From Callorhinchus milii (taxonomy: Eukaryota): a stretch of 49,152 nucleotides of DNA. The translations under genes and the position numbers were made by a program. Shown piece after piece: positions 4,407 through 48,434 of the stretch. The DNA lies in NCBI RefSeq assembly GCF_018977255.1, contig NW_024705390.1:1-49152 (forward strand). Reading direction: 5' to 3'. The notes under the pieces were generated by a model. The model worked only from the letters and a program-made list of their open reading frames with translations, was not told the origin of the DNA and did no database searches. Every line of letters begins with the position of its first letter. Positions within the stretch are counted from its first letter, which is position 1.

Positions 4407-7400
4407 CCTGCGGTTGATCATCGGGGACTTGGCCGCTTTCTTCACCTGTTACCAGAAACAGATGTCAGAGTCAGACCGTCAATGTCTGTAGGTTACAGTC
4501 AGACAGTCACAGGGAAAATGCCTGTATGTCACAGTCAGACAGGAAACGCCTGTGCATTACAGTCAGACAGAAATTGCTGTACATTGTAGGGTTTGACAGT
4601 GAGGTGAGCAGAGAACACGTCACACACGTCCACTTGCAGAGTGTAGTCTGACCCGGTGTACAGCCGCACTGTTATTCACTTACTGGATGGACGGTTGTAC
4701 TGGTGAGTCCCGGGTCCTGTCAATAAACAGACGTCAATTACACACAGACCCAGTGATGCTCGTTCAGCCCTCAAACACACACACATACACACACACACAC
4801 ACAACAGTCAGTTACACACACAGAGACAACACACACATATATAAAACCCAATCTCACACATACAGACAACAGCCGGTCTCACACTCTCACACACAACACT
4901 CAGTAACACAGACAGACAGTGACAGGTGTGGGGCTCAGTGAACCGCAGGACCAATGATGTGATAATTATAATTATAAAACACTGGTTAGGCCTCAACCAC
5001 AGACTGTGGTCAGTTCTGGGCCCCACACTGTAGGGTTAGGGTTAGTTAGAGACTGTGTTCAGTTCTGGGCCCCACACTGTAGGGTTAGAGTTAGTTAGAG
5101 ACTGTGTTCAGTTCTGGGCCCCACACTGTAGGGTTAGGGTTAGTTAGAGACTGTGGTCAGTTCTGGGCCCCACACTGTAGGAAGGATGTCAAGGCATTGG
5201 AGAGTGTGCAAAGGAGATTGACCGCGATGGCACCAGGAATGAGGGCTTCAGTTATCAGGAGAGGCCACAGACGTGAGGATTGTTCTCCTTGGAGCAGAGA
5301 AGGTTCAGAGGAGACTCCAGAAGTTTTGAAAATGATGAGGGGATTCGATAGGGGGAACAAGGAGACACTATTCCCACTGGCGGGTAGGACGGTAACCCCA
5401 GGACACCCATTCAAAATAGTTGTTAAAAGAAACAGAGTGGAGGGGAGGAGACATTTTTATCAGACGCGAGTTGTTGGGATCTGGAATGTATTGCCTGAAA
5501 GGCTGATGGGAGCTGATCAGGGCTATGGGGGGAGAGCGGGGGAGTGGGGTTGATCAGGGCTATGGGGGGAGAGCGGGGGAGTGGGGTTGATCAGGGCTAT
5601 GGGGGGAGAGCGGGGGAGTGGGGTTGATTTGTATCGCACTTTTCAAAGAGACAGACACGATGGGCTGAATGGCCTCCTTCTGTGCTGTATAATTCTATGA
5701 TTCTCTCTGATGATCGGCTCCCGCGACAGTGCCATTTATTCACCTTTTCGCTCTCGTTTTCTTTTCCAGAAGAGAATCCCCACAATCCCAGACACCAGCA
5801 AAGCCCCGATGATGAGGCCCAGGATCCAGGAAGTGGAACCGGCCGGAGTTCTCCCTGTTTTCCCATCTGTTCGGAGTGAACAACAACCAAACTTTCATTA
5901 AGGTCCTGAGAGCGAGAGAGGAGCGGAGTCTGAGAGAGGGAGAGGGTCAGACGATGAGAAGAGACAAACGAGAGAGAATGAGAGAGAGAGAGAGAGAGAG
6001 AGATCTGAAGAGTATTGGAGGACGGGAAGAGAGAGAGGTGAGGAGTATGAGAGAATATTGGAGAACGGGATGAGAAGGGGCGATGGGCGGCTGTTTAGAG
6101 TAGACAGAGAGTTCTCCCGGAGACAGACTGACACCTCATGTTATTCCCGGTTTCCCGCTGTGACCTTATGTGTGTGGATGACCTATGTATGTGGTTGACA
6201 CCCAATCCTCCTCCAGCTGTGACTCCAGATCCCTGATGTCCTGTCAGTTTGTTTGTCAGACATCAAGGACTGGTTGAGCGTAAACTTCCTGTAGCTGAAC
6301 ATCAACAAGACAGAAGCCATACTCCTTGGCTCCCATCGTGTCTCCTGTGGCTCTGACCTCCTCAACCTCCCTGTCCTTTGCCTAAGACTTACTGAACCTG
6401 TACATAACCTGAGCGTCAGCTTCGACCCTCAGCTGTCCTTCCTCCCCCACATCCGGTCCCTGACCAGGACCACTTTCCTCCACCTCCTCCACATTGCCCA
6501 CCTCCGACCTTACCTCACACCCAACACAACCAAAACCCTTGTCCATGTGTTTGTCACCTCCCACCTTGACTATTCCAATGCCCTCCTCTCTGGTCTCCCC
6601 AACCTCACTATCCACAGACCCCAACTAATCCAGAACTCCACCGCCCGTATAACCACCCGCTCGACACACCTCACCCCATCACCCCCATCACCCCCATCAC
6701 CCCGGCCCTCACCAGGCGCCACCGGCTCCCTATCAGAGACACCATCCACTTCAAGATCCTCACACTTGTCTACACGTCCCCGGCACCTCCTTAGTTTCCC
6801 AACCTTTCCTACTCCTCACTCCACCACCCGCCCCCTCCGCTCGGTTGGCTCCGGCCTCCTGCTTGTACCTCGTCCCTTCTGCTCCACCATCAGTGGCTGA
6901 GCTGACAGCCACTACGGTCTGAAACTCTGCAAATCCTTCCCTCAATCCCTCCACATTGCCCCCTCCTTCCCCATTTTCACATCACACCTGAAGACCTTCC
7001 TCTCTGACTGTGCTTACGGTCCCCTCCCCCTCCCCCTGTGTCAGCCCCACCACTGTTAAGTGCTCGAGACGCTGCCCCGTGTGAGGTTGCTGTGTAAACC
7101 CGAGTTGTTGTTGTTGATCTTACCCCACGGCACCTCCAACACCCCCTGGAGGCTGCTGTGCTCCACCAGACAGGAGAAGCCCTGCTCCCCCGCGGAGCCC
7201 GTCTCCAGCTCCATCTGCTTCACTGTCTGAAAGGTGTGGTCGTGGTTGGGTAATACACCGCTGGACTCCACCTCGTGGACAGTGTTGCCGTCCCTTGTCC
7301 AGGTCACCTCGATGGGCCGCGGATAGAAGCCAGTAACAAGACAGGAGAGAAGGGCTCTCCCCCCCACGTCCCTCCTGTAACTGACTGAGACGTCAGGGCG

Positions 7401-9515
7401 GCCTGGGGAGGGGAGCACAGTCACACACAGCTCAGCACTGAGCCCACCCTGACACAGCGAGGCTTAACCATATAATAAGGCCATATTAGTAACAACACAC
7501 ACTCACTCTGTCGCTGGAAGGTGGGTTTTGAATACTGATAATATTCCTCCATCCGATTAAGACAATCATTCTCCAGTTCCTGTTTCCAATACTGATTCAT
7601 GTCTCTGTCGTTGTCCAGTTTCTGTCTCAGGGTCTGAGCCTCGGGAACAGCAGAAATCCATCTCAGGTCGTTTTTGTCAAAGCTGAGAAAATCTTCACCA
7701 TCGAACGCGACTGTGATGTGTCCGTCTGTAGTGCCGTCCTCCCTCACCTCACAGCCAAATACCACCTGGCCATAGTGAGCCCCTGAAATAGCCATTGACA
7801 GCCATTGTGATCAGCGCAGAGTGTGTCTGTCCATCACCGACTGTCTCACACACTCACAGATACACTCACACAATAACAAAGATACACTCACACACACTCC
7901 CTCACACACGTACTGAACACACACAAACACGTGTGCACACACAGTGAACGGCGCTGGATGTTTACAGGGAATATTAAACCACTCACCGCTCGTAATATTC
8001 CTCCTCTTCATCATATACAACATATTCTCCTTCACCGTCATATAATCTGCCTTCACCCTCTCTACACGTATAAAGATGCGCTGTTCTCTAACAGCCGTCT
8101 CTACACCGGGAATCCGACTGACAATTCTCTCACTGTTGCTGTCGTAGTGATAGACCTCAACATCGTCCAACATCGTAGCACGACTGTACTCTGGAAGTTC
8201 TCCGTCCGCTGACACCCACAATTGTAACAATCTCAACACCTGAGGCTCTGTCAGACACAAACACACACACTGGTTGTACGTGTGTAACAGGTCACTGAGT
8301 ACATACTGTTCACACGCTTCACACACACTTGTCACATACAGCACACGCTCGCAACTGTCAAATGCCCACACAGCTCACAGTGTACACACAGCTCACAGTG
8401 TACACACAGGGCACAGTGTACACACAGGGCACAGCTCACAGTGTACACACAGGGCACAGTGTACACACAGCTCACAGTGCACACACAGGGCACAGCTCCC
8501 AATGTACACACAGCTCACAGTGTACACACAGGACACAGCTCACAGTGTACACACAGGACACAGCGTACACACAGCTCACAGTGTACACACAGGACACAGC
8601 GTACACACAGGGCACAGTGTACACACAGGGCACAGTGTACACACAGGGCACAGTGCACACACAGGGCACAGTGCACACACAGGGCACAGTGCACACACAG
8701 GGCATAGCTCACAGTGTACACACAGGGCACAGTTCACAGTGCACACACACGGCACAGCTCACAGTGTACACACAGGGCACAGTGTACACACAGGGCACAG
8801 CGTACACACAGCTCACAGCGTACACACGTACACACAGCTCACAGCTCCCCGCAGCCCTGCGATGGAGCATCAGCCTGGACTGTGAGCTCAGAGTCTCCAA
8901 CTTGTATGTGGTGGGGGGGGTAGGAGGAGAGGGGTTTGCACCCCACAGCCCCTGTAGCTCAGGGGTTAGACCCCTCCCCTCACACCCCACAGCCCCTGTA
9001 GCTCAGGGGTTAGACCCCTCGCCCCACACCCCACAGCCCCTGTAGCTCAGGGGTTAGACCCCTCCCCTCACAAGGCAGAGGATGTGGGTTCGATTCCCGA
9101 GTGGGACAGGACAGGGGGAAACCTTAGGCAGTTTCCTTACTCCCCTAACAACCCAACCCACCCCCACCCGCCCCCACCCCCACCCCCCCCTCACAAACAG
9201 CAGTCAGTGGGAACCTGCGGCTCATCAAATGGTCGATCGCTTTTCCGGTGATGATCCCTTCGACCAAAATAGATTTTGACCGAAAGATTCCGGTGGCTTC
9301 AGCCGCGGCTGTTTGCCCACAACACGTACGTACGGTCACTGCGCTGTCCTGCGAAGGGCTTTGCGACGTCTCGGGAGACGTGAGAAGGCGCCGCGTCAAA
9401 CGCGAGGATTATTATTATTAATATCACTATTATTGTGACAGTCCGACGGCCACTTACTTTGGAGCCCAAAGCACAAGGGCAGGAGGGCAGCGACAGCCGT
9501 CAGGAACAGCTTCAT
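4407..9515 (-). CDS. MHC class I-like heavy chain, copy A. Exons: leader 9458-9515, alpha1 7987-8247, alpha2 7507-7782, alpha3 7124-7402, TM 5744-5866, cyt1 4684-4716, cyt2 4407-4444; no own terminal exon found
   Basis: Signal peptide MKLFLTAVAALLPLCFGLQ. The 261/276/279-nt phase-1 exons carry class I motifs (YHYDS, GCEV...[11 protein letters not shown]...[12 protein letters not shown]...[10 protein letters not shown]...[10 protein letters not shown]). TM is [21 protein letters not shown] followed by KRKRERK. All splice sites are canonical. Confidence 0.92.
5100..5710 (+). mobile_element. CR1-type LINE 3' fragment with embedded 36-bp VNTR (intron 5 of copy A)
   Basis: Translates to CR1 RT C-terminal motifs ([22 protein letters not shown]..., GYGERAGEW) and ends in the CR1 tail gatgggctgaatggcctccttctgtgctgtataattctatgattct. 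Paralogous fragments lie at about 17460-18200, 29285-30850, 40850-41680 and 44810-45490. Confidence 0.85.
6225..7060 (+). mobile_element. L2-type LINE 3' fragment (intron 4 of copy A)
   Basis: Decayed L2 RT C-terminus: [22 protein letters not shown]...[27 protein letters not shown]. Paralogous copies at about 16290-17010, 27665-28850 and 39665-40370; mostly deleted in E. Confidence 0.85.
8370..8840. repeat. Intron-1 minisatellite (18/25-bp units, tgtacacacagggcacagctcacag)
   Basis: Tandem array. The same family lies at 13992-14375, 25805-26212, 35757-36325, 37628-37870, 38170-38350 and 47398-47590. Confidence 0.95.
8940..9420 (+). mobile_element. tRNA-derived SINE with tandemly amplified A-box (3 x 44 bp) in intron 1 of copy A
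   Basis: ccctgtagctcaggggttaga occurs three times, then the B-box ggttcgattccc, gggaaaccttaggcagtttccttactcc and a decayed tail ending (ATT)n. Confidence 0.8.
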
Positions 9516-12215: not shown

Positions 12216-12224
12216 AATGGCCTC

Positions 12225-12470
12225 TCTCTCGCTCCCTGCCCGGCCCCGCCCCTCGCTGCCCGGCCCCGCCCCTCGCTGCCCGCCCCGCCCCGCCCCCGCC
12301 CCTCGCTGCCCGGCCCCGCCCCTCGCTGTCCGGCCCCGCCCCTCGCTGCCCGGCCCCGCCCCTCGCTGCCCGGCCCCGCCCCTCGCTGCCCGGCCCCGCC
12401 CCTCGCTGCCCGGCCCCGCCCCTCGCTGCCCGGCCCCGCCCCTCGCTGCCCGGCCCCGCCCCTCGCTGTC
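12225..12470. repeat. 20-bp GC-box minisatellite (cctcgctgcccggccccgcc)
   Basis: Each unit contains GGGGCGGGGC on the minus strand. Inverted paralogues at 13320-13575 and 22370-22810. Confidence 0.95.
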
Positions 12471-12524
12471 CGGCTCACTGTGTGACATGACAGGACACAG
12501 GAGGTGAGGAGGAGCCGCTCCCCT

Positions 12525-13244: not shown

Positions 13245-13269
13245 NNNNNNNNNNNNNNNNNNNNNNNNN
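13245..13269. other. Assembly gap (25 N)
   Basis: Run of N; there is also a single N at 43771. Confidence 1.
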
Positions 13270-13666
13270 AAGGGGAGCGGCTCCTCCTCACCTCCTGTGT
13301 CCTGTCACGTCACACAGTGACAGCGAGGGGCGGGGCCGGGCAGCGAGGGGCGGGGCCGGGCAGCGAGGGCGGGGGCCGGGCAGCGAGGGGCGGGGCCGGA
13401 GCAGCGAGGGGCGGGCCGGCAAGCGAAGGGCGGGGCCGGACAGCGAGGGGCGGGGCCGGGCAGCGAGGGGCGGGGCGGGGCAGCGAGGGGCGGGCCGGGC
13501 AGCCAGGGGCGGGGCCGGGCAGCGAGGGGCGGGGCCGGGCAGCCAGGGGCGGGGCCGGGCAGCGAGAGAGCGGGCCGGATCTGCTCCAATCTCCCCCTCC
13601 GCACCCCCCAAAATACACAGAATATACTATAACACACAGTGACAGTCAGAGTCTGGGGCCACTTAC

Positions 13667-13724
13667 TGTGGAGCGCACTGCACACAGGCAGGAGGGCAGC
13701 GAGAGCCATCACAAGGACCTTCAT
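13667..13724 (-). CDS. Class I leader exon ([19 protein letters not shown]), inverted relative to copy B
   Basis: 58-nt phase-1 exon with a GTAAGT donor, identical to the leaders of C (25597-25654) and D (35547-35604) but on the minus strand. Confidence 0.85.
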
Positions 13725-13844
13725 GGTCCTGTTGGATGGTCACTGCAATGTGCCCAACACTGGACCTCACACTGATGGTGTCCAACCGGACCTCAGCTCT
13801 GAGCCCTCCCTCTGATCTCACTCTGTGGCTGAGCTCACACTGAG

Positions 13845-13910
13845 CCAATGGGAGGATCTCGGGAGCTGCTCCCAACTTGTCTCCAGGTAAAAGGCCTGAA
13901 ATAGGTGACC
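13845..13910 (-). promoter_or_regulatory. Divergent S-X-Y promoter module inside the inverted block
   Basis: Reverse strand: cacctat (S-like), ccttttacctggagac (X1), X2 altered to gttggg, cccattgg (Y). Confidence 0.65.
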
Positions 13911-14649: not shown

Positions 14650-17600
14650 AGCCTGAGGTGTTGAGATGTTTTGTTACGCTGATATCGGAGGACAACAATT
14701 TTCCGGAGTATCTCGTTGCTGTGATGTTGGAGGATGTTCAGATCTATCACTATGAGAGCAACAGTCGGACAATTGTCATCCGGATTCCCAGTGTACAGAC
14801 GGCTGTTAATGATCATCACTTCAACATATATCTAGAAATATGGAAGTTAGTTCATACGACAATGAAGGAGAATATGCTGTATATGATGGAGAGCAGAAAT
14901 ATCACGAGCGGTGAGTGGTTTAATATTCCCTGTGAACATCCAGCACTGTTCACTGTGTGCGTGTGAGTGTGTGAGAGAGAGAATGTGTGTGTGTGTGAGT
15001 GTGAGACAGTCGGTGATGGACAGACACACTCTGCGCTGATCACAATGGCTGTCAATGGCTATTTCAGGGATTCACTATGTCCAGGTGTTGTCTGGCTGTG
15101 AGGTGAGGGAGGACGGCACTACAGACGGACACCTCACAGTCGCGTTCGATGGTGAAGATTTTCTCAGCTTTGACAAAAACGACCTGAGATGGATTTCTGC
15201 TGTTCCCGAGGCTCAGACCCTGAGACAGAAACTGGAAAATCAGACAGACATGAATAAGTATTTGAAACAGGACCTGGAGAATGATTGTCCGACTCGGATG
15301 GAGGAATACTATCAGCGTTCAAAATCCGCCTTCCAGAGACAGAGTGAGTGTGTGTTGTTACTAATATAAAATCACAGAATCATGTGGCAACTTGTGGCTG
15401 CGGATCACCAACCTTATTTGCCTCATTCCGTGCCTTACGCACACGTACTCCCAAACTGCCTTTGTCTGCACAGCATTTCTTGCTGTCCGATCGCTCCTGT
15501 TTCTGGAATCTTTATTCTCCCCAGTCCTCGCCAGGCGCCACTGCTCCCAGTCACCGAACAGATCAACTTCAAGATCCTCTCACTCGTTGTCAAATCACCT
15601 CCTGCCCTCGCGCCTCCCTATCTCTGTGATTTGCTTGTCCTCCACTCCACCACCCGCTGCCTCCGCTCGGCTGGCTCCAGCCTCCTGATTGTCCCTCGGC
15701 CCCTCCGCTCTGCCATGGGTTGCCGTGCCTTTGGATACCACACCCCGAAACTCTGGAACTCTCTACGCACCATCCCAGACTCACGTCTGCGGATGCAGAA
15801 ACGCCTGTCAAGCCCCCGATTAACAAATCACATATGACAACTGCATTTGGGATTCGATCATTCCCTATATGACCTTATTATATGGTTAAGCCTCGCTGTG
15901 TCAGGGTGGGCTCAGTGCTGAGCTGTGTGTGACTGTGCTCCCCTCCCCAGGCCGCCCTGACGTCTCAGTCAGTTACAGGAGGGACGTGGGGGGGAGAGCC
16001 CTTCTCTCCTGTCTTGTTACTGGCTTCTATCCGCGGCCCATCGAGGTGACCTGGACAAGGGACGGCAACACTGTCCACGAGGTGGAGTCCAGCGGTGTAT
16101 TACCCAACCACGACCACACCTTTCAGACAGTGAAGCAGATGGAGCTGGAGACGGGCTCCGCGGGGGAGCAGGGCTTCTCCTGTCTGGTGGAGCACAGCAG
16201 CCTCCAGGGGGTGTTGGAGGTGCCGTGGGGTAAGATCAACAACAACAACTCGGGGTTACACAGCAACCTCACACGGGGCAGCGTCTCGAGCACTTAACAG
16301 TGGTGGGGCTGACACAGGGGGAGGGGGAGGGGACCGTAAGCACAGTCAGAGAGGAAGGTCTTCAGGTGTGATGTGAAAATGGGGAAGGAGGGGGCAATGT
16401 GGAGGGATTGAGGGAAGGATTTGCAGAGTTTCAGACCGTAGTGGCTGTCAGCTCAGCCACTGATGGTGGAGCAGAAGGGACGAGGTATAAGCAGGAGGCC
16501 GGAGCCAACCGAGCGGAGGGGGCGGGTGGTGGAGTGAGGAGTAGGAAAGGTTGGGAAACTAAGGAGGTGTCGGGGACGTGTAGACAAGTGTGAGGAACTT
16601 GAAGTGGATGTGGTCTCTGATAGGGAGCCGGTGGCGCCTGGTGAGGGCCGGGGTGATGGGGGTGATGGGGGTGATGGGGGTGAGGTGTGTCGAGCGGGTG
16701 GTTATACGGGCGGTGGAGTTCTGGATTAGTTGGGGTCTGTGGATAGTGAGGTTGGGGAGACCAGAGAGGAGGGCATTGGAATAGTCAAGGTGGGAGGTGA
16801 CAAACACATGGACAAGGGTTTTGGTTGTGTTGGGTGTGAGGTAAGGTCGGAGGTGGGCAATGTGGAGGAAAGTGGTCCTGGTCAGGGACCGGATGTGGGG
16901 GAGGAAGGACAGCTGAGGGTCGAAGCTGATGCTCAGGTTATGTACAGGTTCAGTAAGTCTTAGGCAAAGGACAGGGAGGTTGAGGAGGTCAAAGCCACAG
17001 GAGACATACATGGGTCATCAGCATAAATAAGGTCACAGCGGGAAACAGGAATAACATGAGGTGTCAGTCTGTCTCCGGGAGATCTCTCTGTCTTCTCTAA
17101 ACAGCCGCCCATCGCCCCTTCTCATCCAACATTCTCTCATACTCCTCACCTCTCTCTCTTCCCATCCTCCAATACTCTGCAGATCTCTCTCTCTCACTTG
17201 TTGCTTTCTCTCTTCTCGCCCTCTGACCCTCTCCCTCTCTCAGACTCCGCTCCTCTCTCGCTCTCAGGACCTTAATGAAAGTTTGGTTGTTGTTCACTCC
17301 GAACAGATGGGAAAACAGGGAGAACTCCGGCCGGTTCCACTTCCTGGATCCTGGGCCTCATCATCGGGGCTTTGCTGGTGTCTGGGATTGTGGGGATTCT
17401 CTTCTGGAAAAGAAAACGAAAGAAAAAAGATGAATGGCACTGTCGCGGGAACCGATTATCAGAGAGAATCATAGAATTATACAGCACAGAAGGAGGCCAT
17501 TCAGCCCATCGTGTCTGTCTCTTTGAAAAGTGCGATACAAATCAACCCCACTCCCCCGCTCTCCCCCATAGCCCTGATCAACCCCACTCCCCCGCTCTCC

Positions 17601-22196: not shown

Positions 22197-22369
22197 CCCC
22201 CCCCCCGGGGCCGTGCCTCCCCCCCGGGGCCGTGCCCCCCCATCGGGGCCGTGCCCCCCCCGGGGCCGTGCCCCCCCGGGCCGTGCCCCGGGGCCGTGCC
22301 CCCCCGGCCGTGCCCCCCCGGGGCCGTGCCCCCCCCCGGGGCTGTCCTGTCATGTCACACAGTGAGCCG

Positions 22370-25394: not shown

Positions 25395-25460
25395 CACAAC
25401 CTGTTTCAGAGCCTTTTCCCGGAGACCCGTTACGAGCGGCTCCCGAGATCCTCCCATTGG
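25395..25460 (+). promoter_or_regulatory. S-X-Y class I promoter module, copy C
   Basis: caacctgtttcagagccttttcccggagacccgttacgagcggctcccgagatcctcccattgg, 137 bp before the ATG. Confidence 0.75.
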
Positions 25461-25596
25461 CGGTGAGTGAGTCAGTGTGAGATCAGTCAGAGAGGGAGTG
25501 AGTGAGATCAGAGAGGCCTTAGGGCTGAGGTCCGGTTGGACACCATCAGTGTGAGGTCCAGTGTTGGGCACATTGCAGTGACCATCCAACAGGACC

Positions 25597-35546: not shown

Positions 35547-38500
35547 ATGAAGGTCCTTGTGATGGCTCTCGCTGCCCTCCTGCCTGTGTGCAGTGCGCTC
35601 CACAGTAAGTGGCCCCAGACTCTGACTGTCACTGTGTGTTATAGTATATTCTGTGTATTTTGGGGGGTGCGGAGGGGGAGATTGGAGCAGAGATTGCAGC
35701 GGAGTTCCTTTTCTCAGTCTGTCACCATTCACTGACACTGTTCTCTTCCCTTCCGTGTGTACACTGTGAGCTGTGCCCTGTGTGTACACTGTGAGCTGTG
35801 CCCTGTGTGTACACTGTGAGCTGTGCCCTGTGTGTGCACTGTGAGCTGTGCCCTGTGTGTACACTGTGAGCTGTGCCCTGTGTGTACACTGTGCCCTGTG
35901 TGTACACTGTGAGCTGTGCCCTGTGTGTACACTGTGAGCTGTGCCCTGTGTGTACACTGTGAGCTGTGCCCTGTGTGTACACTGTGAGCTGTGCCCTGTG
36001 TGTACACTGTGAGCTGTGCCCTGTGTGTACACTGTGAGCTGTGCCCTGTGTGTATGCTGTGCCCTGTGTGTACGCTGTGCCCTGTGTGTACGCTGTGCCC
36101 TGTGTGTACACTGTGCCCTGTGTGTACGCGGTGCCCTGTGTGTACGCGGTGCCCTGTGTGTACGCGGTGCCCTGTGTGTACCCGGTGCCCTCTGTGTGCA
36201 CTGTGAGCTGTGCCGTGTGTACGCGGTGCCCTGTGTGTACGCGGTGCCCTGTGTGTACGCGCTGCCCTGTGTGTACGCGGTGAGCTGTGTGTACACTGTA
36301 CGCTGTGCCCTGTGTGTACACTGTGCCCGATTTCTCCAACCGAACCCCCTACTACCCTGTTCACACCCTGCGTTCAGCGGGCTCCGGCCTGCTTCACCTG
36401 CCCGCCTCGCTCCCGCGACTATTGGCGGGTGGGCCTTCCCGCCACTCTGCCCCCACCCTCTGGAACTCCATCCCGCAGTCCCTCCGCCTCGCACCCTCCC
36501 TCGAGCCCTCCCTCGCCATCTTCAAGACTCACCTCTGGACCCTCCTCTTTGACCGTGCTTTCAATCTCCTGCTACCCCCCTTGCCCTTCACCCTCCTCCA
36601 CCCCGACCCCCGGCTCGGGTGTGTAACTCTGTCTGTCCAGCGCCTTGGAACATCCTCCCGACATGAAAAGCGCTTTACACATGTAATTTTGTGGTGGTGG
36701 TTGTTGTTATAGTTATTTCTCTGTTACAGCACCGAAGGAGACCATTGGCCATTTGTGCCTGTGCCGGTTTGGGGCTGGGAGGGGAGGGGGGGGCGGTGGG
36801 GGTGCAGGGGCTGAGGGGTGAGTGGCTGAGGGAGTGGGGCTGATGTGGAGGGTTTGACGCGGAGGGGATGAGGGGCACAGATATTGAACCTGGGTTCCTT
36901 TTCTCTGTCTGTGAGATTGCTCTCGTTCCCTCCGTGTGTTCACTGTGAGCTCTGTGCGCTGCTGTTGTATTATTGTCATTCCAGAGATGGACACAATACT
37001 CCAACTGAGCCCCAACCAGTGATTTCTAAAGATTTAGCAAAACTTCTTTGCTTTGTACTCTGTGCCTCTATATATAAAGCCAAGGATCCCATAGGCCTTT
37101 TTAACAGTGTGTCGTGTCGTGTCCTGCCACCTTCAAAGGTTCGAGCACGTGAACCCCCAGGTCTCTCGGTTCCTGCACCCCATTTAAAATGATACCATTT
37201 ATCTCGCAATATCTCTCCTCATTCCTCCTGACAAAGAGACTGACACACAGAGAGACAGACACATACACACACAGACTGAGACAAACAGAGACAGACACAA
37301 AGACAGACATACTGAAAACTGACACCGAAAGGCAGAGAGAGAGAGTGAGAGGATGTGTTGTGTGGATGTGATGGACACTCACTCACACAGAGCCACAAAC
37401 CGCCAAACACAAATCGCAGCGGAAGCTTTTACCCGGAGCCACTTTGCCAACGTTTCAAAAGGGAATTGGAAGGCACTTGAAAAGGAAATCATTGGAAGGC
37501 TTTGGGGAGAGGGAAGGGTTGAATATCAAGACCAGCCGATAGGTGTGTGAGATCAGTGAGTGAGAGAGAGTCAGTGTGTGTGGAGTCGCCGAGTGACAGA
37601 GTCAGTGTGTGAGCAGAGTGTCTGATTGAGCTGTGCCCTGTGTGTACACTATGCCCTGCGTGTGCACCGTGCCCTGCGTGTGCACCGTGCCCTGCGTGTG
37701 CACTGTGCCCTGCGTGCGCACTGTGCCCTGCGTGCGCACTGTGCCCTGCGTGCGCACTGTGCCCTGCGTGTACACACTGAGGTGTGTTTACACTCTGAGA
37801 TTTGCCCTGTGTGTACACTGTCTCCTGTGTGTATACTGTGAGCTGTGCCCTGTGTGTACACTATGAGCTAATTGCGCTCTGCATGCGTACTGTGATGTGC
37901 GTTTGCACTGTGTTTGTGAGTGTATACTGTGAGTTGTGTGTACACTTTGAGCTGTGTGTACACTGTGCCCTGGGTACGCAGTGTCCGATCATCCAAAACT
38001 CTGCAGCTCGTGTACTCTCACCACCAGACTCCGTGACCCCATCACTCCCACCCTCGCCCGACCCCACTGGCTCCCCACCCCCCAGAGGATCGAGTTCAAG
38101 ATCCTCGTCCTCACCTTTAAGGTCACCTTGTTGTTGTCCTGCATGTACACTGTGCCCTGGCTATAAACTGGGCCCTGTGTGTACACTGTGTCCTGCGTGG
38201 ATAATGTGAGCTGTGTGTGCACTGATCTGTGTGCTCTGTGCCCTGTGTGTACACTGTGAGCTGTGCCCTGTGTGTACACTGTGAGCTGTGCCCTGTGTGT
38301 ACACTGTGCCCTGTGTGTACACTGTGTCCTGTGTGTACACTGTGAGCTGTGTGGGCATTTGACAGTTGCGAGCGTGTGCTGTATGTGACAAGTGTGTGTG
38401 AAGCGTGTGAACAGTATGTACTCAGTGACCTGTTACACACGTACAACCAGTGTGTGTGTTTGTGTCTGACAGAGCCTCAGGTGTTGAGATTCTTACAAAC

Positions 38501-41500
38501 ACTGGTGTCAGCGGACGGAGAACTTCCAGAGTACTACTGTGCTGCGATGTTGGATGATGTTGAGATCTATCACTACGACAGCAACAGTGAGAGAATTGTC
38601 AGTCGGATTCCCAGTGTACAGACGGCTGTTAGAGAACAGCGCTTCCCTATACGTGTGGAGGAGGTGAAGACAGATTATATGTGGTTGAAGGAGAAAATGT
38701 TGTATATGATGAAGAGCAGGAATATTATGAGCGGTGAGTGGTTTAATATTCTCAGTGAACATCCAGCACCGTTCACTGTGTGTGAGTGTGTGTGTTGAGA
38801 ACGTGTGTGAGGGAGAGTGAGTGTGTGTGAGTGTCTCTGTGATTATGTGTGTGAGTGTGTGAGACGGTCGGTGATGGACAGACACACTCTGCGCTGACAC
38901 AATGGCTGTCAATGGCTATTTCAGGGGCTCACTATGCCCAGGCGATAACTGGCTGTGAGGTGAGGGAGGACGGCACTACAGACGAACACTTCACAGTCGC
39001 ATTCGATGGTGAAGATTTTCTCAGCTTTGACAAAAACGACCTGAGATGGATTTCTGCTGTTCCCGAGGCTCAGACCCTGAGACAGAAACTGGACAACGAC
39101 AGAGACATGAATCAGGATTGGAAACAGGTCCTGGAGAATGATTGTCCTACTTGGATGGAGGAATACTATCAGTATTCAAAGTCCACCTTCCAGCGACAGA
39201 GTGAGTGTGTGTTGTTACTAATATGGCCTTATTATATGGTTAAGCCTCGCTGTGTCAGGGTGGGCTCAGTGCTGAGCTGTGTGTGACTGTGCTCCCCTCC
39301 CCAGGCCGCCCTGACGTCTCAGTCAGTTACAGGAGGGACGTGGGGGGGAGAGCCCTTCTCTCCTGTCTTGTTACTGGCTTCTATCCGCGGCCCATCGAGG
39401 TGACCTGGACAAGGGACGGCAACACTGTCCACGAGGTGGAGTCCAGCGGTGTATTACCCAACCACGACCACACCTTTCAGACAGTGAAGCAGATGGAGCT
39501 GGAGACGGGCTCCGCGGGGGAGCAGGGCTTCTCCTGTCTGGTGGAGCACAGCAGCCTCCAGGGGGTGTTGGAGGTGCCGTGGGGTAAGATCAACAACAAC
39601 AACTCGGGTTACACAGCAACCTCACACGGGGCAGCGTCTCGAGCACTTAACAGTGGTGGGGCTGACACAGGGGGAGGGGGAGGGGACCGTAAGCACAGTC
39701 AGAGAGGAAGGTCTTCAGGTGTGATGTGAAAATGGGGAAGGAGGGGGCAATGTGGAGGGATTGAGGGAAGGATTTGCAGAGTTTCAGACTGTAGTGGCTG
39801 TCAGACAAGTGTGAGGATCTTGAAGTGGATGGTCTCTCTGATAGGGAGCCAGTGGCGCCTGGTGAGGGCCGGGGTGATGGGGGTGATGGGGTGAGGTGTG
39901 TCGAGCGGGTGGTTATACGGGCGGTGGAGTTCTGGATTAGTTGGGGTCTGTGGATAGTGAGGTTGGGGAGACCAGAGAGGAGGGCATTGGAATAGTCAAG
40001 GTGGGAGGTGACAAACACATGGACAAGGGTTTTGGTTGTGTTGGGTGTGAGGTAAGGTCGGAGGTGGGCAATGTGGAGGAGGTGGAGGAAAGTGGTCCTG
40101 GTCAGGGACCGGATGTGGGGGAGGAAGGACAGCTGAGGGTCGAACCTGACGCTCAGGTTATGTACAGGTTCAGTGAGTCTAAGGCAAAGGGCGGTGAGGT
40201 TGAGGAGGTCAGAGCCACAGGAGACACGATGGGAGCCAAGGAGTATGGCTTCTGTCTTGTTGATGTTCAGCTACGGGAAGTTTACGCTCAACCAGTCCTT
40301 GATGTCTGACAAACAAACTGACAGGACATCAGGGATCTGGAGTCACAGCTGGAGGAGGATTGGGTGTCAACCACATACATAGGTCATCCACACACATAAG
40401 GTCACAGCGGGAAACCGGGAATAACATGAGGTGTCAGTCTGTCTCCGGGAGAACTCTCTGTCTACTCTAAACAGCCGCCCATCGCCCCTTCTCATCCCAT
40501 TCTCCAATATTCTCTCATACTCCTCACCTCTCTCTCTTCCCGTCCTCCAATACTCTGCAGATCTCTCTCTCTCTCTCTCACTTGTTGCTTTCTCTCTTCT
40601 CATCCTCTGACCCTCTCCCTCTCTCAGACTCCGCTCCTCTCTCACTCTCAGGACCTTAATGAAAGTTTGGTTGTTGTTCACTCCGAACAGATGGGAAAAC
40701 AGGGAGAACTCCGGCCGGTTCCACTTCCTGGATCCTGGGCCTCATCATCGGGGCTTTGCTGGTGTCTGGGATTGTGGAGATTCTCGTCTGGAAAAGAAAA
40801 CGAGAGCGAAAAGGTGAATAAATGGGACTGTCGCGGGAGCCGATTATCAGAGAGAATCATAGAATTATACAGCACAGAAGGAGGCCATTCAGCCCATCGT
40901 GTCTGTCTCTTTGAAAAGTGCGATACAAATCAACCCCACTCCCCCGCTCTCCCCCCATAGCCCTGATCAACCCCACTCCCCCGCTCTCCCCCCATAGCCC
41001 TGATCAACCCCACTCCCCCGCTCTCCCCCATAGCCCTGATCAACCCCACTCCCCCGCTCTCCCCCCATAGCCCTGATCAACCCCACTCCCCCGCTCTCCC
41101 CCGATCAACCCCACTCCCCCGCTCTCCCCCCATAGCCCTGATCAACCCCACTCCCCCGCTCTCTCCCCATAGCCCTGATCAACCCCACTCCCCCGCTCTC
41201 CCCCCATAGCCCTGATCAACCCCACTCCCCCGCTCTTCCCCATAGCCCTGATCAACCCCACTCCCCCGCTCTCCCCCATAGCCCTGATCAACCCCACTCC
41301 CCCGCTCTCCCCCCATAGCCCTGATCAACCCCACTCCCCCGCTCTCCCCCATAGCCCTGATCAACCCCACTCCCCCGCTCTCCCCCATAGCCCTGATCAA
41401 CCCCACTCCCCCGCTCTCTCCCATAGCCCTGATCAACCCCACTCCCCCGCTCTCCCCAAGCCCTGATCAACCCCCAGTGGGAATTCTCCTTGTTCCGCCT

Positions 41501-43365
41501 ATCGAATCCCCTCATCATTTTCAAAACTTCTGGAGTCTCCTCTGAACCTTCTCTGCTCCAAGGAGAATAATCCTCACGTCTGTGGCCTCTCCTGATAACT
41601 GAAGCCCTCATTCCTGGTGCCATCGCGGTCAATCTCCTTTGCACACTCTCCAATGCCTTGACATCCTTCCTACAGTGTGGGGCCCAGAACTGAACACAGT
41701 CTGTGTCTGAGGCGTAACCAGTGTTTTATAATAATAATTATCACATCACTGGTCCTGTGGTTCACTGACCCCCACACCCGTCACTGTCTGTCTGTGTTAC
41801 TGGGTGTTGTGTGTGAGAGTGTGAGACCGGCTGTTGTCTCTCTATGTGTGAGACCGGGTTTTATATGTGTGTGTTGTCTCTCTGTGTGTAACTGACTGTT
41901 GTGTGTATGTGTGTGTGTGTGTTTGAGGGCTGAACGAGCATCACTGGGTCTGTGTGTAATTGACGTCTGTTTATTGACAGGACCCGGGACTCACCAGTAC
42001 AGCCGTCCATCCAGTAAGTGAATAACAGTGCGGCTGTACACCGGGTCAGACTACACTCTGCAAGTGGACGTGTGTGACGTGTTCTCTGCTCACCTCACTG
42101 TCAAACCCTACAATGTACAGCAATTTCTGTCTGTCTGACTGACTGTCTGACTGTAATGTACAGGCGTTTCCTGTCTGACTGTGACATACAGGCATTTTCC
42201 CTGTGACTGACTGACTATAACATAGAGATATTGACTGTCTGACTCTGACTCCATCTTTTATCTGTTTCTGGTCACAGGTGAAGAAAGCGGCCAATCATCC
42301 AATGGTCAATTAACAGGTAAGAGCCGGTCAGCGCCACACGGCCTCTCGTGATCCCCAGTCACTAACCCGCTGTGAGGATCAGGACTGGGCTGTGACAGTG
42401 CCACTGGGGGAGTGGGGGAGTGAGTGAGGGAGTGAGGGACTGGGCTGTGACAGGGCCACTGGGGGAGTGGAATCCCCCCCCCCCATCCCCCCCCCCCCGC
42501 GCTCACCGGGGACGTCCTTCCTGAGACCGGGAAGTGATCCCAGTGAAGCTCACAGGGTATTGGCCATCCAGTGCCCACTGGCACCGGGGCCCTGGCACTG
42601 AGCGGGTTACCACTGGCCACTGGGGCAGCCACGCGGCCCACTCGGCTCCTGTTATCCTGCGGCCAAAGCCCTGAGGGGTCGGGCAGTCCTCGCTGGACAA
42701 GCAGCGGGAAGCTGCCAGACAGGGCTCTCAGGGGCAAAGCTGTGGGTTTAGTGGGTTAGACTCCAGCAGTTACCCCAACGCACACTCTGGGTCCCCCCCA
42801 AACCACTCACACTCACACACACACACTCACACACACACACACACACACACTCACACACACACACACACACACTCACACTCACTCACACACACTCGGGGTC
42901 CCCAAGCCTTGGCTCTGGCCAACCCTCTCCAGGATCAGGTAAACACCATGTGTCCTGCACAGAGAGAGAGAGAGAGAGAGCACTCCATCCCAGACACGGG
43001 GAGAGATCCGTGTGGAGGTGACATACACACGTGTGACTCTCAGGCCTGGTTTGGGGACTGTTAAGCACAGTGATGAGTTTGTGTGGGTCAGACACGCGGC
43101 TGATCACGGTGACGTGGGTCAGACACGCGGCTGATCGCGGTGACGTGGGTCAGACACGCGGCTGATCGCGGTGAAGTGGGTCAGACACGCGGCTGATCGC
43201 GGTGATGTGGGTCAGACACGCGGCTGATCGCGGTGACGGGTTTCCATGTGGGTCAGACACCCGGTGTGATGGACAGCACGAGGTCACAGCACATTGCCTG
43301 CAGATGGTGTGAGACTAACCAGGAGTTTGGGTGTATTTTTGTTCTCAGGAACCCGGAGCGAGTGA
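35547..43365 (+). CDS. MHC class I-like heavy chain, copy D. Exons: leader 35547-35604, alpha1 38473-38733, alpha2 38925-39200, alpha3 39305-39583, TM 40691-40813, cyt1 41981-42013, cyt2 42278-42316, probable terminal exon from 43349 (GTRSE*, stop 43363-43365)
   Basis: All exons are open with canonical splice sites. The terminal exon is inferred from the acceptor tttttgttctcag and is the least certain part. Confidence 0.88.
36330..36680 (+). mobile_element. L2 3' fragment in intron 1 of copy D
   Basis: Translates [46 protein letters not shown] and ends in the shared tail cagcgccttggaacatcc...gaaaagcgcttt. Confidence 0.75.
36985..37215 (-). mobile_element. CR1 RT fragment in intron 1 of copy D
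   Basis: The reverse strand gives [14 protein letters not shown]...[16 protein letters not shown]...LEYCVHLW across frameshifts. Confidence 0.8.
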
Positions 43366-43824
43366 GGAACGGAGAATGGAGGAGCGGAGCTGAGGGACTG
43401 AGAGGAGCACAAGCGAAGGCCTGAGGGTCCTGGTGTCTCCTTTGCTCTCAGTCACTGATTCTCTCTGAGCGTCACTGGTATAACAGCAGATTCTGTTCAC
43501 ACTGACGGTGCCTTATCACATCATTGAGACGTCTCAAGTGAAGTGAATTGACTGTATTTGTGGGCGAAACATCACATTTAAAAATTCAAGATTCTCTATT
43601 AATAGTAATATCAATAACACAATGATATAAAAATATAGAGAGTGTATCTCGGGAATTGTAGAAAACTGTTGGAGTACTGAGAGTCTGTGTCTCTGTCCCT
43701 CTCTCTCTGTCTCTCTCTCTGTCTCTGTGTGTGTCTCTCTCTCTGTGTCTCTCTGTCTTCCCGTTCCCCCNTCTGTATCTCTGTCCATCTGTGACACCAG
43801 TTGTCACCAGCAACTGGGGGAGGG

Positions 43825-44045: not shown

Positions 44046-45518
44046 GGAATAGTGGAGGGGGGAGAGGGGAAAGGGGGTAATTGTGGGCTCGTGTGGAGAA
44101 TAAACACGGACACGGATGGGTTGGGCCTCATTCGCTGTTGGATTGTGTTTAATTCTCTGTATGTACGTCAGTCAATACTGTCGTTGTTGGGGTGTGAGTG
44201 TTGGTGTGTAAACACGTGTCATCTCAGGGGTTTCCGTGTGTCGGTGGCTGTGTCTCTGGTTTGTGACACACACGGCTGATCAAAACAAGCGTGTAACGTG
44301 TCACAAGTATGTGTGGGTGTGAATTGGGCTGTGATTCGGGCGATTTATTCTTTGTCAATTTCAAGGAATCAAAATAAACTGAAAATGGTTCATTAATATT
44401 TGAGCAAAATTTGTGATGATATTAATGGGTAAAACAACTCAATGTTTCTCACACTCAGACTGGAGTGTGTGAGTGAGTGTGAGGCTCACAGTGCCCCCCC
44501 CACACCCCCACACTGCCCCCCCCCACACCTGCCCCCCCCCCCCCACACTGCCCCCCCCACAGCCCCCCCCACACTCGTTCAGCCCTCACACACACACACA
44601 CACATACACACAACAGTCAGTTACACACAGAGAGACAACACACACATATATAAAACCCAGTCTCACACATACAGACAACAGCCGGTCTCACACTCTCACA
44701 CACAACACTCAGTAACACAGACAGACAGTGACAGGTGTGGGGGTCAGTGAACCACAGGACCAGTGATGTGATAATTATAGTTATAAAACACTGGTTAGGC
44801 CTCAACCACAGACGGTGTTCGGTTCTGGGCCCCACACTGTAGGGTTAGAGTTAGTTAGAGACTGTGTCCAGTTCTGGGCCCCACACTGTAGGAAGGATGT
44901 CAAGGCATTGGAGAGTGTGCAAAGGAGACTGACCGCGATGGCACCAGGAATGGCACCGGTGACCCGAGGACACCCATTCAAAATAGTTGTTAAAAGAAAC
45001 AGAGTGGAGGGGAGGAGACATTTTATCAGACGCAAGTTGTTGGGATCTGGAATGTGTTGCCTGAAAGGCTGGTGGGAGCTGATCAGGGCTATGGGGAGAG
45101 AGCGGGGGAGTGGGGTTGATCAGGGCTATGGGGAGAGAGCGGTGGAGGGGTTGATCAGGGCTATGGGAACAGTGGGGGAGTGGGGTTGATCATGGCTATG
45201 GGATAGAGCGGGGGTTGGGGTTGATCAGGGCTATGGGGGAGAGCGGGGGAGTGGGGTTGATCAGGGCTGTGGGGGAGAGCGGGGGAGTGGGTTGATCAGG
45301 GCTATGGGAGAGAGCGGGGGAGTGGGGTTGATCAGGGCTATGGGAGAGAGCGGGGAGTGGGGTTGATCAGGGCTATGGGGGAGAGCGGGGGAGTGGGGTT
45401 GATTTGGATCGCACTTTTCAAAGAGACAGACACGATGGGCTGAATGGCCTCCTTCTGTGCTGTATAATTCTATGATTCTCTCTGATAATCGGCTCTCGCG
45501 ACAGTCCCATTTATTCAC

Positions 45519-48434
45519 CTTTTCGCTCTCGTTTTCTTTTCCAGAAGAGAATCCCCACAATCCCAGACACCAGCAAAGCCCCGATGATGAGGCCCAGGAT
45601 CCAGGAAGTGGAACCGGCCGGAGTTCTCCCTGTTTTCCCATCTGTTCGGAGTGAACAACAACCAAACTTTCATTAAGGTCCTGAGAGCGAGAGAGGAGCG
45701 GAGTCTGAGAGAGGGAGAGGGTCAGAGGGCGAGAAGAGAGAAACGAGAGAGAGAGAGATCTGCAGAGTATTGGAGGACGGGAAGAGAGAGAGGTGAGGAG
45801 TATGAGAGAATATTGGAGAATGGGATGAGAAGGGCGGATGGGCGGCTGTTTAGAGAAGACAGAGAGTTCTCCCGGAGACAGACGGACACCTCATGTTATT
45901 CCCGGTTTCCCGCTGTGACCTTATGTGTGTGGATGACCTATGTATGTGGTTGACACCCAATCCTCCTCCAGCTGTGACTCCAGATCCCTGATGTCCTGTC
46001 AGTTTGTTTGTCAGACATCAAGGACTGGTTGAGAGTAAACTTCCCGTAACACTTACTGAAAGGTCCCCTCCCCCTCCCCGTGTCAGCCCCACCACTGTTA
46101 AGTGCTCGAGACGCTGCCCCGTGTGAGGTTGCTGTGTAAACCCGAGTTGTTGTTGTTGATCTTACCCCACGGCACCTCCAACACCCCCTGGAGGCTGCTG
46201 TGCTCCACCAGACAGGAGAAGCCCTGATCCCCCGCGGAGCCCGTCTCCAGCTCCATCTGCTTCACTGTCTGAAAGGTGTGGTCGTGGTTGGGTAATACAC
46301 CGCTGGACTCCACCTCGTGGACAGTGTTGCCGTCCCTTGTCCAGGTCACCTCGATGGGCCGCGGATAGAAGCCAGTAACAAGACAGGAGAGAAGGGCTCT
46401 CCCCCCCACGTCCCTCCTGTAACTGACTGAGACGTCAGGGCGGCCTGGGGAGGGGAGCACAGTCACACACAGCTCAGCACTGAGCCCACCCTGACACAGC
46501 GAGGCTTAACCATATAATAAGGCCATATTAGTAACAACACACACTCACTCTGTCGCTGGAAGGTGGACTTTGAATACTGATAGTATTCCTCCATCCAAGT
46601 AGGACAGTCATTCTCCAGGACCTGTTTGCAATACTGATTGATGTCTGTGTCATTGTCCAGTTTCCGTCTCAGGGTCTGAGCCTCGGGAACAGCAGAAATC
46701 CATCTCAGGTCGTTTTTGTCAAAGCTGAGAAAATCTTCACCATCAAACGCCATTGTGAAGTGTTCGTATGTAGTGCCGTCCTCCCTCACCTCACAGCCAG
46801 TTATCGCCTGGGCATAGTGAGCCCCTGAAATAGCCATTGACAGCCATTGTGATCAGCGCAGAGTGTGTCTGTCCATCACCGACCGTCTCACACACTCACA
46901 CACATAATGACAGGGACACTCACACACACTCACTCTCCCTCACAGATGTAGTCAACACACACACACACACACAGTGAACAGTGCTGGATGTTCACAGGGA
47001 GTATTGAGCCACTCACCGCTCATAATATTCCTGCTCTTCATCATATACAACATTTTCTCCTTCAACGTCACATAATGTCTCTTCACCCCCTCTACATGTA
47101 CAAGGAAGTGCTGTTCTCTAACAGCCGTCTGTACACCGGGAATCCGACTGACAATTCTCTCACTGTTGCTGTCGTAGTGATAGATCTCAACATCCTCCAA
47201 CATCGCAGCACGACTGTACTCTGGAAGTTCTCCGTCCGCTGACACCAGTGTGTGTAACAATCTCAACACCTGAGGCTCTGTCAGACACAAACACACACAC
47301 TGATTGTACGTGTGTAACAGGTCACTGAGTACATACTGTTCACACACTTCACACACACTTGTCACATACAGCACACGCTCGCAACTGTCAAATGCCCACA
47401 CAGCTCACAGTGTACACACAGGGCACAGTGTACACACAGGGCACAGTGTACACACAGCTCACAGTGTACACACAGCTCACAGTGTACACACAGCTCACAG
47501 TGTACACACAGGGCACAGTCTACACACAGGACACAAGTGTACACACAGGGCACAGCTCACAGCGTACACACGTACACACAGCTCACAGCTCCCTGCAGCC
47601 CTGCGATGACTGTGAGCTCAGTCACGCTGTGGGGGGAGGGGGGGGGGTAGGAGGAGAGGGGTTCGCACCCCACAGCCCCTGTAGCTCAGGGGTTAGACCC
47701 CTCGCACCCCACAGCCCCTGTAGCTCAGGGGTTACACCCCTCCCCTCACCCCCACAGCCCCTGTAGCTCAGGGGTTAGACCCCTCCCCTCACCCCCACAG
47801 CCCCTGTAGCTCAGGGGTTAGACCCCTCACCCCACACCCCACAGCCCCTGTAGCTCAGCGGTTAGACCCCTCCCCTCACAAGGCAGAGGATGTGGGTTGG
47901 ATTCCCGAGTGGGACAGGACAGGGGGAAACCTTAGGCAGTTTCCTTACCCACCCCCACCCACACCCCACACCCCACCCCAGCCCCACCCCCCCACCCACA
48001 CACCCCCCCCCCCACACCCCCACCCCCCCCCCCACCCACCCCCAAGCCCACCCCCCCCCCCGCCACCCACCCCCACCCCCCACCCCCCCCCACCCACCCC
48101 CACCCCACCCACTCACGAACAGCAGTCAGTGGGAACCTGCAGCTCATCAAATGGTCGATCGCTTTTCCGGTGATGATCCCTTCGACCAAAATAGATTTTG
48201 ACCGAAAGATTCCGGTGGCTTCAGCCGCGGCTGTTTTCCCACAACACGTACGTACGGTCACTGCGCTGTCCTGCGAAGGGCTTTGCGACGTCTCAGGAGA
48301 CGTGAGAAGGCGCCGCGTCAAACGCGAGGATTATTATTAATATCACTATTATTGTGACAGTCCGACGGCCACTTACTTTGGAGCCCAAAGCACAAGGGCA
48401 GGAGGGCAGCGACAGCCGTCAGGAACAGCTTCAT
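45519..48434 (-). CDS. MHC class I-like heavy chain, copy E, lacking cytoplasmic exons. Exons: leader 48377-48434, alpha1 47017-47277, alpha2 46549-46824, alpha3 46166-46444, TM 45519-45641
   Basis: Open exons with canonical sites and the same leader as A. Homology to the other copies stops at 44574, about 43 nt before the cyt1 acceptor. Confidence 0.88.
47665..48340 (+). mobile_element. tRNA-derived SINE with five A-box units in intron 1 of copy E
   Basis: Paralogue of 8940-9420 with five units of ccctgtagctcaggggttaga. Confidence 0.8.

Follow-up and report, generated by a model that had tools for sequence, protein, structure and literature searches.

Five nonclassical MHC class I genes of Callorhinchus milii that appear to combine a gene-converted alpha3 domain with diversified grooves

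Background

The combination of a converted alpha3 domain, a variable groove and assorted lesions of the transmembrane (TM) exon is a well-known pattern among nonclassical (class Ib) genes of the major histocompatibility complex (MHC), seen in the mouse H2-Q region, in Xenopus XNC and in shark UEA. In the mouse region Qa-2 is anchored by glycosylphosphatidylinositol (GPI) and has a charged residue in its TM segment and a truncated tail, and Q10 is secreted. Here we describe five class I genes, called A to E, from a stretch of 49,152 nucleotides of the genome of the holocephalan Callorhinchus milii (record MU250313.1, assembly GCA_018977255.1); this whole stretch is referred to as the window, and positions are counted from its first letter. 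We consider it probable, from comparison of their sequences, that the five genes are young class Ib paralogues lying beside SLC44A4, a marker gene of MHC class III, and that their evolution has combined duplication with segmental gene conversion and partial decay. A preliminary description of the same stretch, made from its letters and a list of open reading frames (ORFs), had seen in them a recently radiated family that diversifies both its groove and its membrane anchor.

A 2023 survey of the MHC in cartilaginous fishes found some class Ib lineages to be common to elasmobranchs and holocephalans; in that survey the MHC proper of C. milii is unplaced, and its supplements contain neither UDA or UEA labels nor a C. 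milii MHC map (PMC10751288). According to a 2025 review, UDA, UFA and UGA are single-copy lineages, UFA and UGA being CD1-like lipid binders (PMC12562908). Holocephalans are the least-known branch with respect to MHC organisation, and the scaffold examined here presents a class Ib cluster of this branch beside a class III marker.

Class I identity of the five genes

The RefSeq proteins XP_042202283 to XP_042202289 are all encoded in the window, and all five genes already bear automatic RefSeq names (ZAG-like, MR1-like and F10-like); a query with the alpha2 exon of D led to a 394-residue protein, which is D itself (XP_042202284.1). The ORF listing, a self-BLAST and a five-way alignment together delimit five collinear class I gene units, with A and E on the minus strand and B, C and D on the plus strand (Table 1). 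From the leader to the cytoplasmic exons their exon lengths are 58/261/276/279/123/33/38-39 nucleotides (nt), the plan of a class I heavy chain, and the alpha1, alpha2 and alpha3 exons (261, 276 and 279 nt) are open in all five copies, with AG/GT borders and phase-1 junctions.

In Pfam, alpha2 matches MHC_I (1e-16) and alpha3 matches C1-set (1e-17), and alpha1 searched alone is too diverged to give a match. An AlphaFold (AF2) model of A, calculated from a 55-sequence alignment, has a mean predicted local distance difference test score (pLDDT) of 81; its top structural matches are class I and MR1, with TM-scores of 0.8-0.9 across chicken BF2, fish, shark and MR1 heavy chains and of 0.9 to chicken BF2. 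Class I molecules have disulfides between cysteines 101 and 164 in alpha2 and 203 and 259 in alpha3, and the disulfide cysteines are kept in all five copies (mature positions 98, 161, 200 and 257). An extra cysteine is carried by each of C and D, E and B. N-glycosylation sequons also vary: the whole ectodomain of D (38473-39583) has none, the near-universal N86 sequon NIT is replaced by NIM in both D and E (47277-46166 in E), and sequons are gained in the alpha2 helix of E (NDT) and B (NQT).

Alpha3 identity and segmental exchange

Among A to D the alpha3 exon does not differ at any of its 279 nt, and E departs from it at only one of the 279 (G>T), a nonsynonymous change (E>D). The identity continues into the adjoining non-coding sequence: within the last 100 alignment columns of intron 3, 0-1 of the 84 compared bases differ among the copies, the start of intron 4 shows 0-4 differences in 300, and near-identity extends through most of intron 4 in A-D. 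Other parts of the genes are diverged. In intron 1, A, C, D and E differ from one another at 8-11 of 250 positions (3-4%) and B is about 40% different; B is moreover 24-27% diverged from the other copies in alpha1, yet 0% diverged in alpha3 within A-D; expressed as identity, B scores 74-80% against the others in alpha1 and 100% in alpha3. As in a gene-conversion family, the identity spans non-coding flanks and conflicts with the diverged segments that neighbour it. Because introns 3 and 4 equal exon 4 in their degree of identity and stand next to these diverged segments, the sameness of alpha3 is best attributed to gene conversion, and not only to purifying selection on the protein, which the pattern does not require. 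An alpha3 domain kept invariant by conversion is a familiar trait of class I families.

The homogenised segment also occurs outside the window. A second subgroup of the family is represented by proteins P0004, P0005, P0156-P0163 and P0252 from an older C. milii assembly; it is ~75% identical in alpha1-alpha2 and has nearly the same alpha3, nearly the same intron 4 and even the same read-through peptide from intron 4. The family is therefore larger than five, and its homogenisation is family-wide and extends beyond the window. The alpha3 of the classical-type C. milii protein V9KZ04 is quite different from that of the family.

Sliding-window comparison revealed that identity partners switch along the gene. 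In the promoter and leader C pairs with D (99-100%) and A with E, in parts of intron 1 A pairs with E and B with C, and in alpha2 A pairs with C and D with E. In the TM region A, B, D and E stand together (96-100%) with C apart (86-90%), and in exon 7 B, C and D stand together against A. We counted the sites that divide A, C, D and E two against two: in the 5' flank, leader and intron 1, 40 sites support the split of A and E from C and D and 3 that of A and C from D and E, as against 0 and 15 in intron 2 and alpha2 (Fisher p = 2.7e-11). Since different segments give different nearest neighbours, segment-scale exchange among the copies is evident from the alignment.

Groove variation

Divergence among A, C, D and E amounts to 6-11% in the alpha1 exon, compared with 3-4% in the preceding 300 bp of intron, and the nonsynonymous rate (dN) exceeds the synonymous rate (dS) in all six pairs of these copies, with dN/dS of 1.1-4.6. 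For B against the others dN/dS is 0.6-1.0. In alpha1 the variable residues are concentrated in strands 1 and 2 and the first two thirds of the helix, and in alpha2 they are concentrated in strands 1 and 2 and the helix. To relate them to the groove we applied an HLA-A2-style numbering by hand, which is approximate and was anchored on P20, N86, C101, W133, K146 and C164; a koala sequence considered as a ruler for the HLA numbering was dropped because it proved to be ZAG-like. With this approximate numbering there are 50 groove-equivalent positions and 44 variable residues, and 27 of the latter coincide with the former (odds ratio 7.6, p = 7e-8).

Classical molecules bind the ends of the peptide through eight residues, namely Y7, Y59, Y84, T143, K146, W147, Y159 and Y171. 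The family retains K146 and Y171, with Y7 in addition in C, which by the same hand-made numbering amounts to 2-3 of the 8 and falls short of what is expected of class Ia. With so few of these residues retained, the grooves read as nonclassical.

These results agree with several statements of the preliminary description. Its nonclassical class I family in a basal jawed vertebrate is recovered in C. milii, with a class I Pfam assignment and fold and with most peptide anchors lost. The single alpha3 protein of A-D, with one E>D change in E, turns out to be equally uniform at the DNA level. A recent radiation with segmental recombination is what the conflict between the two splits indicates, and the alpha1/alpha2 differences that it had placed at groove positions do fall preferentially on groove-equivalent residues.

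Leaders and decay of gene B

Two types of leader are found, MKLFLTAVAALLPLCFGLQ in A and E and another, of 19 residues, in C and D. Gene B is preceded by a promoter-plus-leader cassette of the C/D type that points away from it, intron 1 of B beginning at 13929 on the plus strand, and the RefSeq model of B correspondingly lacks a signal peptide. The arrangement has the appearance of a clean in-place inversion of 13580-13928. The ~330-350 bp involved include the promoter and leader exon and reach 87 bp into intron 1, an assembly gap is 310 bp away, and no inverted repeats of at least 40 bp were found flanking the cassette. Intron 3 of B additionally contains a SINE-like (short interspersed element) insertion of ~500 bp at about 15370-15866. 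Given the inverted leader, a lost splice donor in the TM exon, the SINE-like insertion and the most diverged alpha1 of the family, B is a probable pseudogene, whose alpha3 would have been recently overwritten by conversion.

C-terminal tails

The TM exon encodes the same 41 residues in A and E. In A it is followed by intact exons 6 and 7, in keeping with the normal TM form ascribed to this gene in the preliminary description, and the gene call ends at 4408. A, B, C and D all have exon 6 (GPGTHQY[S/N]RPS), and their exon 7 is 39 nt long except in A, where it has 38 nt. A terminal exon occurs once in the window, downstream of D, and blastn at word size 9 did not find it near A, B, C or E. Joined to a 38-nt exon 7 it yields, in frame 0, a 14-residue tail, as in the cDNA-derived protein V9KN34 and in the RefSeq protein of A; joined to a 39-nt exon 7 it yields GTRSE and a stop, and D reads in this way because its exon 7 has 39 nt where that of A has 38. 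The 14 residues included in the RefSeq A protein are without coding sequence near A on the scaffold, and the gene call does not translate to that protein.

Each of the remaining tails carries its own alteration. The read-through tail earlier noticed in B results from a 4-bp deletion (GTGA) that removes the donor of the TM exon, whereupon the frame runs into the intron as far as a stop at 17644. In D the TM segment has GIVE for GIVG, and the glutamate reported there is thus present (Gly>Glu), but the exon that was regarded as its private last one is the terminal exon common to the family, read in another frame. C had been called truncated or GPI-like. The truncation is real: its TM exon has a 6-bp deletion, a 3-bp insertion and a TGG>TGA change, with which the protein ends in WIPGRIILQASGIVVGILV, and the region has lost another 18 bp close to the acceptor and 10 bp beyond the stop. 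The predicted end, PSGSTS-WIPGR-IILQASGIVVGILV and a stop, fits a GPI signal only loosely, in having small residues, a spacer, a hydrophobic end and no cytoplasmic tail; its last 14 residues have a mean hydropathy of 2.49, and its best 19-residue window reaches 1.68 versus 2.74 in A. As the TM region of C is the most diverged of the five and has suffered several indels, it looks more like decay than design. E, finally, had been credited with no tail exons, which is incorrect: its TM exon is intact, encodes the same protein as that of A and is followed by a read-through GE and a stop, the sole predicted product ending in KRKRERKGE. What E lacks is exons 6 and 7 and any terminal exon; its homology to D and the other copies breaks off in a G-rich repeat ~45 bp short of exon 6.

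The proposal that surface form is shuffled as a module among the copies finds no support in this comparison, since each odd tail is a private lesion of one copy (a point change, small indels or a deletion) and no tail type is shared by two copies with different grooves.

A further feature of the TM-exon donor is an AATAAA located 4 nt past it (GGTGAATAAATGG) in A, C, D and E (5743-5732, near 29250, 40814-40825 and 45518-45507, respectively); the AATAAA at the donor of B has been removed by the 4-bp deletion. It is possible that this motif serves as an intronic polyadenylation site, giving tail-less products that end in KRKRERKGE.

Relatives and phylogeny

Outside C. milii no relative is closer than 30-38% identity in alpha1-alpha2. 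The best chondrichthyan matches come from a lineage labelled MR1-like in RefSeq, of which each shark or ray species has a single gene; its members are 57-87% identical across species. In maximum-likelihood trees built with no named representative of UDA or UFA, the C. milii family forms a clade of its own (100/100) and joins this conserved elasmobranch lineage (88/76 with alpha1-alpha2, 94/87 with alpha3, and 91/89 and 98/93 with alpha1 to alpha3). The comparison with chondrichthyan class I lineages that the preliminary description had called for therefore groups the family with a conserved single-copy lineage, but approximately unbiased (AU) tests do not reject two other placements (p = 0.17-0.46), and the trees carry a long-branch warning. 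The conserved lineage itself is probably one of the published single-copy lineages UDA or UFA. When a candidate subset of C. milii sequences was searched with a profile for an orthologue of this lineage, only the classical-type V9KZ04 was obtained, and absence of the orthologue is thus not shown.

By sequence, the best solved match both for gene A and for the conserved elasmobranch lineage is the shark nonclassical UGA (PDB 9ch4, released 2026). A CD1-like reading of the family, prompted by this match, was not adopted, the helices of the family being charged and not hydrophobic. The only cDNA found, that behind V9KN34, is A-like: it is ~95% identical to A in alpha2, where 5 residues differ, and has the same type of tail.

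Neighbourhood, repeats and assembly

Besides the five genes the window contains the 3' part of a choline transporter gene resembling SLC44A4 (Table 1). It lies on the same strand as A and starts ~1.2 kb past the end of A, and its 5' half is outside the window. Given that both this 5' half and the terminal exon of A are missing, this part of the window may be misassembled or rearranged. In the white shark SLC44A4 is found beside EHMT2 and C2/Bf (PMC10751288, supplements).

A gap between the upstream flanks of A and B disrupts no exon, and the order and orientation of A and of the transporter gene relative to B-E rest on the scaffold join at this point. The gap is flanked in opposite orientations by a 20-bp GC-rich minisatellite (CAGCGAGGGGCGGGGCCGGG) at 12232-12474 and 13321-13578. 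Arrays of a 20-bp GC-rich unit with GGGGCGGGG, which resembles an Sp1 box, are located at these two places and at 22155-22880, that is, ~3 kb upstream of A and of C and directly upstream of the cassette of B, each oriented as its gene. A single N at 43771 lies in a repeat-rich stretch between the convergent 3' ends of D and E, where the 3' exons of E are missing.

Fragments of an ORF resembling those of transposable elements (TE; MMRGFDRGNKETLFPLAG) are present at 5104-5553 (plus strand), 17614-18183 (minus), 41288-41653 (minus) and 44815-45189 (plus), antisense in intron 5 of several copies and beside a 36-37-bp tandem array; being common to several copies, the fragment would have been in place before the duplications. 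ARAGORN called a tRNA-Val(CAC) at 9036-9108 (plus) in intron 1 of A and a tRNA-Ala(TGC) at 27985-28055 (plus) in the TE-rich intron 4 of C, and both calls may be SINE heads rather than genes.

Table 1. Coordinates of the class I genes and accompanying features in the window
Feature	Position	Strand	Details
Gene A (XP_042202287.1)	4408..9515	-	leader 9515-9458, alpha1 8247-7987, alpha2 7782-7507, alpha3 7402-7124
Gene A, 3' exons	TM exon 5866-5744, exon 6 4716-4684, exon 7 4445-4408	-	exon 7 of 38 nt
Gene B (XP_042202288.1)	14650..18874	+	alpha1 14650-14910, alpha2 15068-15343, alpha3 15951-16229
Gene B, 3' exons	TM exon from 17307, exon 6 18539-18571, exon 7 18836-18874	+	read-through stop 17644
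Gene C (XP_042202286.1)	25597..31548	+	leader 25597-25654, alpha1 26333-26593, alpha2 26925-27200, alpha3 27305-27583
Gene C, 3' exons	TM exon 29138-29235, exon 6 31213-31245, exon 7 31510-31548	+	remodelled TM exon ending TGA; exons 6 and 7 downstream of stop
Gene D (XP_042202283-85)	35547..43393	+	leader 35547-35604, alpha1 38473-38733, alpha2 38925-39200, alpha3 39305-39583
Gene D, 3' exons	TM exon 40691-40813, exon 6 41981-42013, exon 7 42278-42316, terminal exon 43349-43393	+	Gly>Glu in TM exon; exon 7 of 39 nt
Gene E (XP_042202289.1)	45511..48434	-	leader 48434-48377, alpha1 47277-47017, alpha2 46824-46549, alpha3 46444-46166, TM exon 45641-45519
Promoter-plus-leader cassette, C/D type	13580..13906	-	ATG at 13724; 90% identical to C 25399-25741 reversed
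Assembly gap, 25 N	13245-13269	.	head-to-head, palindrome-like junction between upstream flanks of A and B
SLC44A4-like choline transporter gene, 3' part	249..3225	-	241 residues called; Pfam Choline_transpo

Competing explanations

Under the explanation that we favour, namely young class Ib paralogues shaped by duplication, conversion and partial decay, a conversion tract running from intron 3 through exon 4 into intron 4 would keep alpha3 identical in all copies, and all products would share one membrane-proximal domain, which in other class I molecules docks beta2-microglobulin and a co-receptor. The alpha1 and alpha2 exons would meanwhile accumulate mostly amino-acid-changing differences at groove-equivalent positions, and the copies probably bind different nonclassical ligands or receptors. 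The 3' ends would diverge through private lesions and not through exchanged modules: A would represent the full-length, expressed type, D would be full length with a glutamate in the TM segment and a short frame-shifted tail, and E would be limited to the tail-less TM form. C would end within a weakened TM segment, with GPI anchoring, secretion or degradation all possible as its fate, and B, with its inverted leader, lost donor and SINE insertion, would most likely be dead.

The preliminary description had instead proposed an adaptive repertoire, in which ligand specificity and surface form (TM, GPI or soluble) are recombined independently by exon shuffling, as in the mouse Q region. Segmental exchange is indeed real and all five C-termini differ; the end of C resembles a GPI signal in its PSGSTS, short spacer, 14-residue hydrophobic end and lack of a cytoplasmic tail, the two indels before its stop preserve the frame, and the AATAAA that follows the TM-exon donor by 4 nt in all copies but B could yield tail-less forms. 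However, this proposal appears quite unlikely when the tails are compared, for no variant recurs in two copies with different grooves and each goes back to one private lesion. The TM region of C is the most diverged (86-90% against 96-100%) and lacks a further 18 bp close to its acceptor, the 3' exons of E are gone because homology is cut off at a junction rich in repeats, and B has three independent defects. Decay might of course have gone further, leaving one expressed A-type gene among dying duplicates, with groove differences produced by neutral drift and by conversion from diverged donors. The lesions that B, C and E carry at their 3' ends and B also at its 5' end, dN/dS values of ~1 in alpha2 and of 0.6-1.0 for B against the others, the want of any sequon in D, the loss of the N86 site in D and E, and a sole cDNA that is A-like all accord with such a history. 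We nevertheless regard it as unlikely, because none of the 15 ectodomain exons is interrupted or has lost a splice site, all structural cysteines are kept, the changes cluster at groove-equivalent positions and are not evenly spread, and in alpha1 dN exceeds dS in every one of the six pairs of A, C, D and E. It is very unlikely, on the other hand, that the number of copies, the perfect identity of alpha3 or the odd arrangements arose as artefacts of haplotype duplication, collapse or consensus polishing in a scaffold rich in repeats. The assembly has been described as highly fragmented (PMC10751288), it has a gap at a palindromic junction with an inverted cassette 310 bp away and a single N at 43771, and it does not encode the terminal exon of A that the RefSeq protein contains; but outside the alpha3 tract the copies differ by 3-11%, and also by private indels and TE insertions, which far exceeds the usual haplotype divergence of one locus, and the older, independent assembly gives further paralogues with nearly the same alpha3 (the P0004 group).

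Several points also weigh against the explanation by duplication, conversion and partial decay. Only one of the pairwise tests in alpha1 is significant (A against E, p = 0.026) and the domain-wide dN/dS of alpha2 is near 1 (0.4-1.2), both of which would fit relaxed constraint as well, and the groove positions depend on a hand-made, approximate HLA-A2 numbering. None of the five copies is an exact match to V9KN34. The quality of the local assembly is uncertain, the terminal exon of A being missing and the odd 5' end of B lying 310 bp from the gap, and perfect identity over ~0.7-1.4 kb could partly reflect polishing of the assembly across copies. A more ambitious form of the explanation would see in the cluster an ancient class Ib lineage, originally single-copy and expanded only in holocephalans, that is sister to the conserved elasmobranch MR1-like lineage, itself related to lipid-binding UGA, with several expressed copies whose grooves are positively selected and whose TM, tail-less and GPI-anchored or secreted forms all have one converted alpha3. 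We hold this to be doubtful; if true, it would represent a polygenic ligand-display system for innate-like T or natural killer (NK) cells at the base of the jawed vertebrates.

The young paralogues described here leave the general picture of class Ib family evolution unchanged. They offer a clean, countable case of alpha3 homogenisation with groove diversification in the slowest-evolving known jawed vertebrate, and they supply copy-specific markers for expression studies and candidates for work on ligands and receptors.

Comparison with known systems

The conserved elasmobranch lineage (e.g. XP_060706688.1 of Hemiscyllium and XP_051899694.1 of Pristis) is the nearest group to the C. milii family in our trees and has in common with it the motif LPEYS..ML(D/E)D and one of 10 residues. 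It differs in being only 30-37% identical, in having one copy per species, and in its very hydrophobic alpha1 helix, as opposed to the charged helices of the C. milii genes. With the classical UAA type (C. milii V9KZ04, Heterodontus AAC60348) the family shares exon plan, disulfide cysteines and fold, but it keeps only 2-3 of the 8 peptide-end residues, and V9KZ04 groups with the classical sequences, away from the family.

Shark UEA and UBA and the mhc1-uba genes of Xenopus (XNC) are likewise expanded class Ib families with varied grooves (PMC10751288, PMC12562908). UEA and UBA sit within the elasmobranch MHC and the XNC cluster at a chromosome end, and in our trees the elasmobranch multicopy group is monophyletic (100/100) and apart from the C. 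milii family.

The parallel with the mouse H2-Q region drawn in the preliminary description is fair as an analogy, and goes no further than that. Both are tandem arrays of young class Ib paralogues with a conserved alpha3, in which small lesions of the TM exon alter, or in C. milii would alter, the surface form. The C. milii cluster is of independent, holocephalan origin, its tails are known from sequence only, and its grooves lack most of the peptide-end residues, whereas Qa-2 binds peptides in the classical way.

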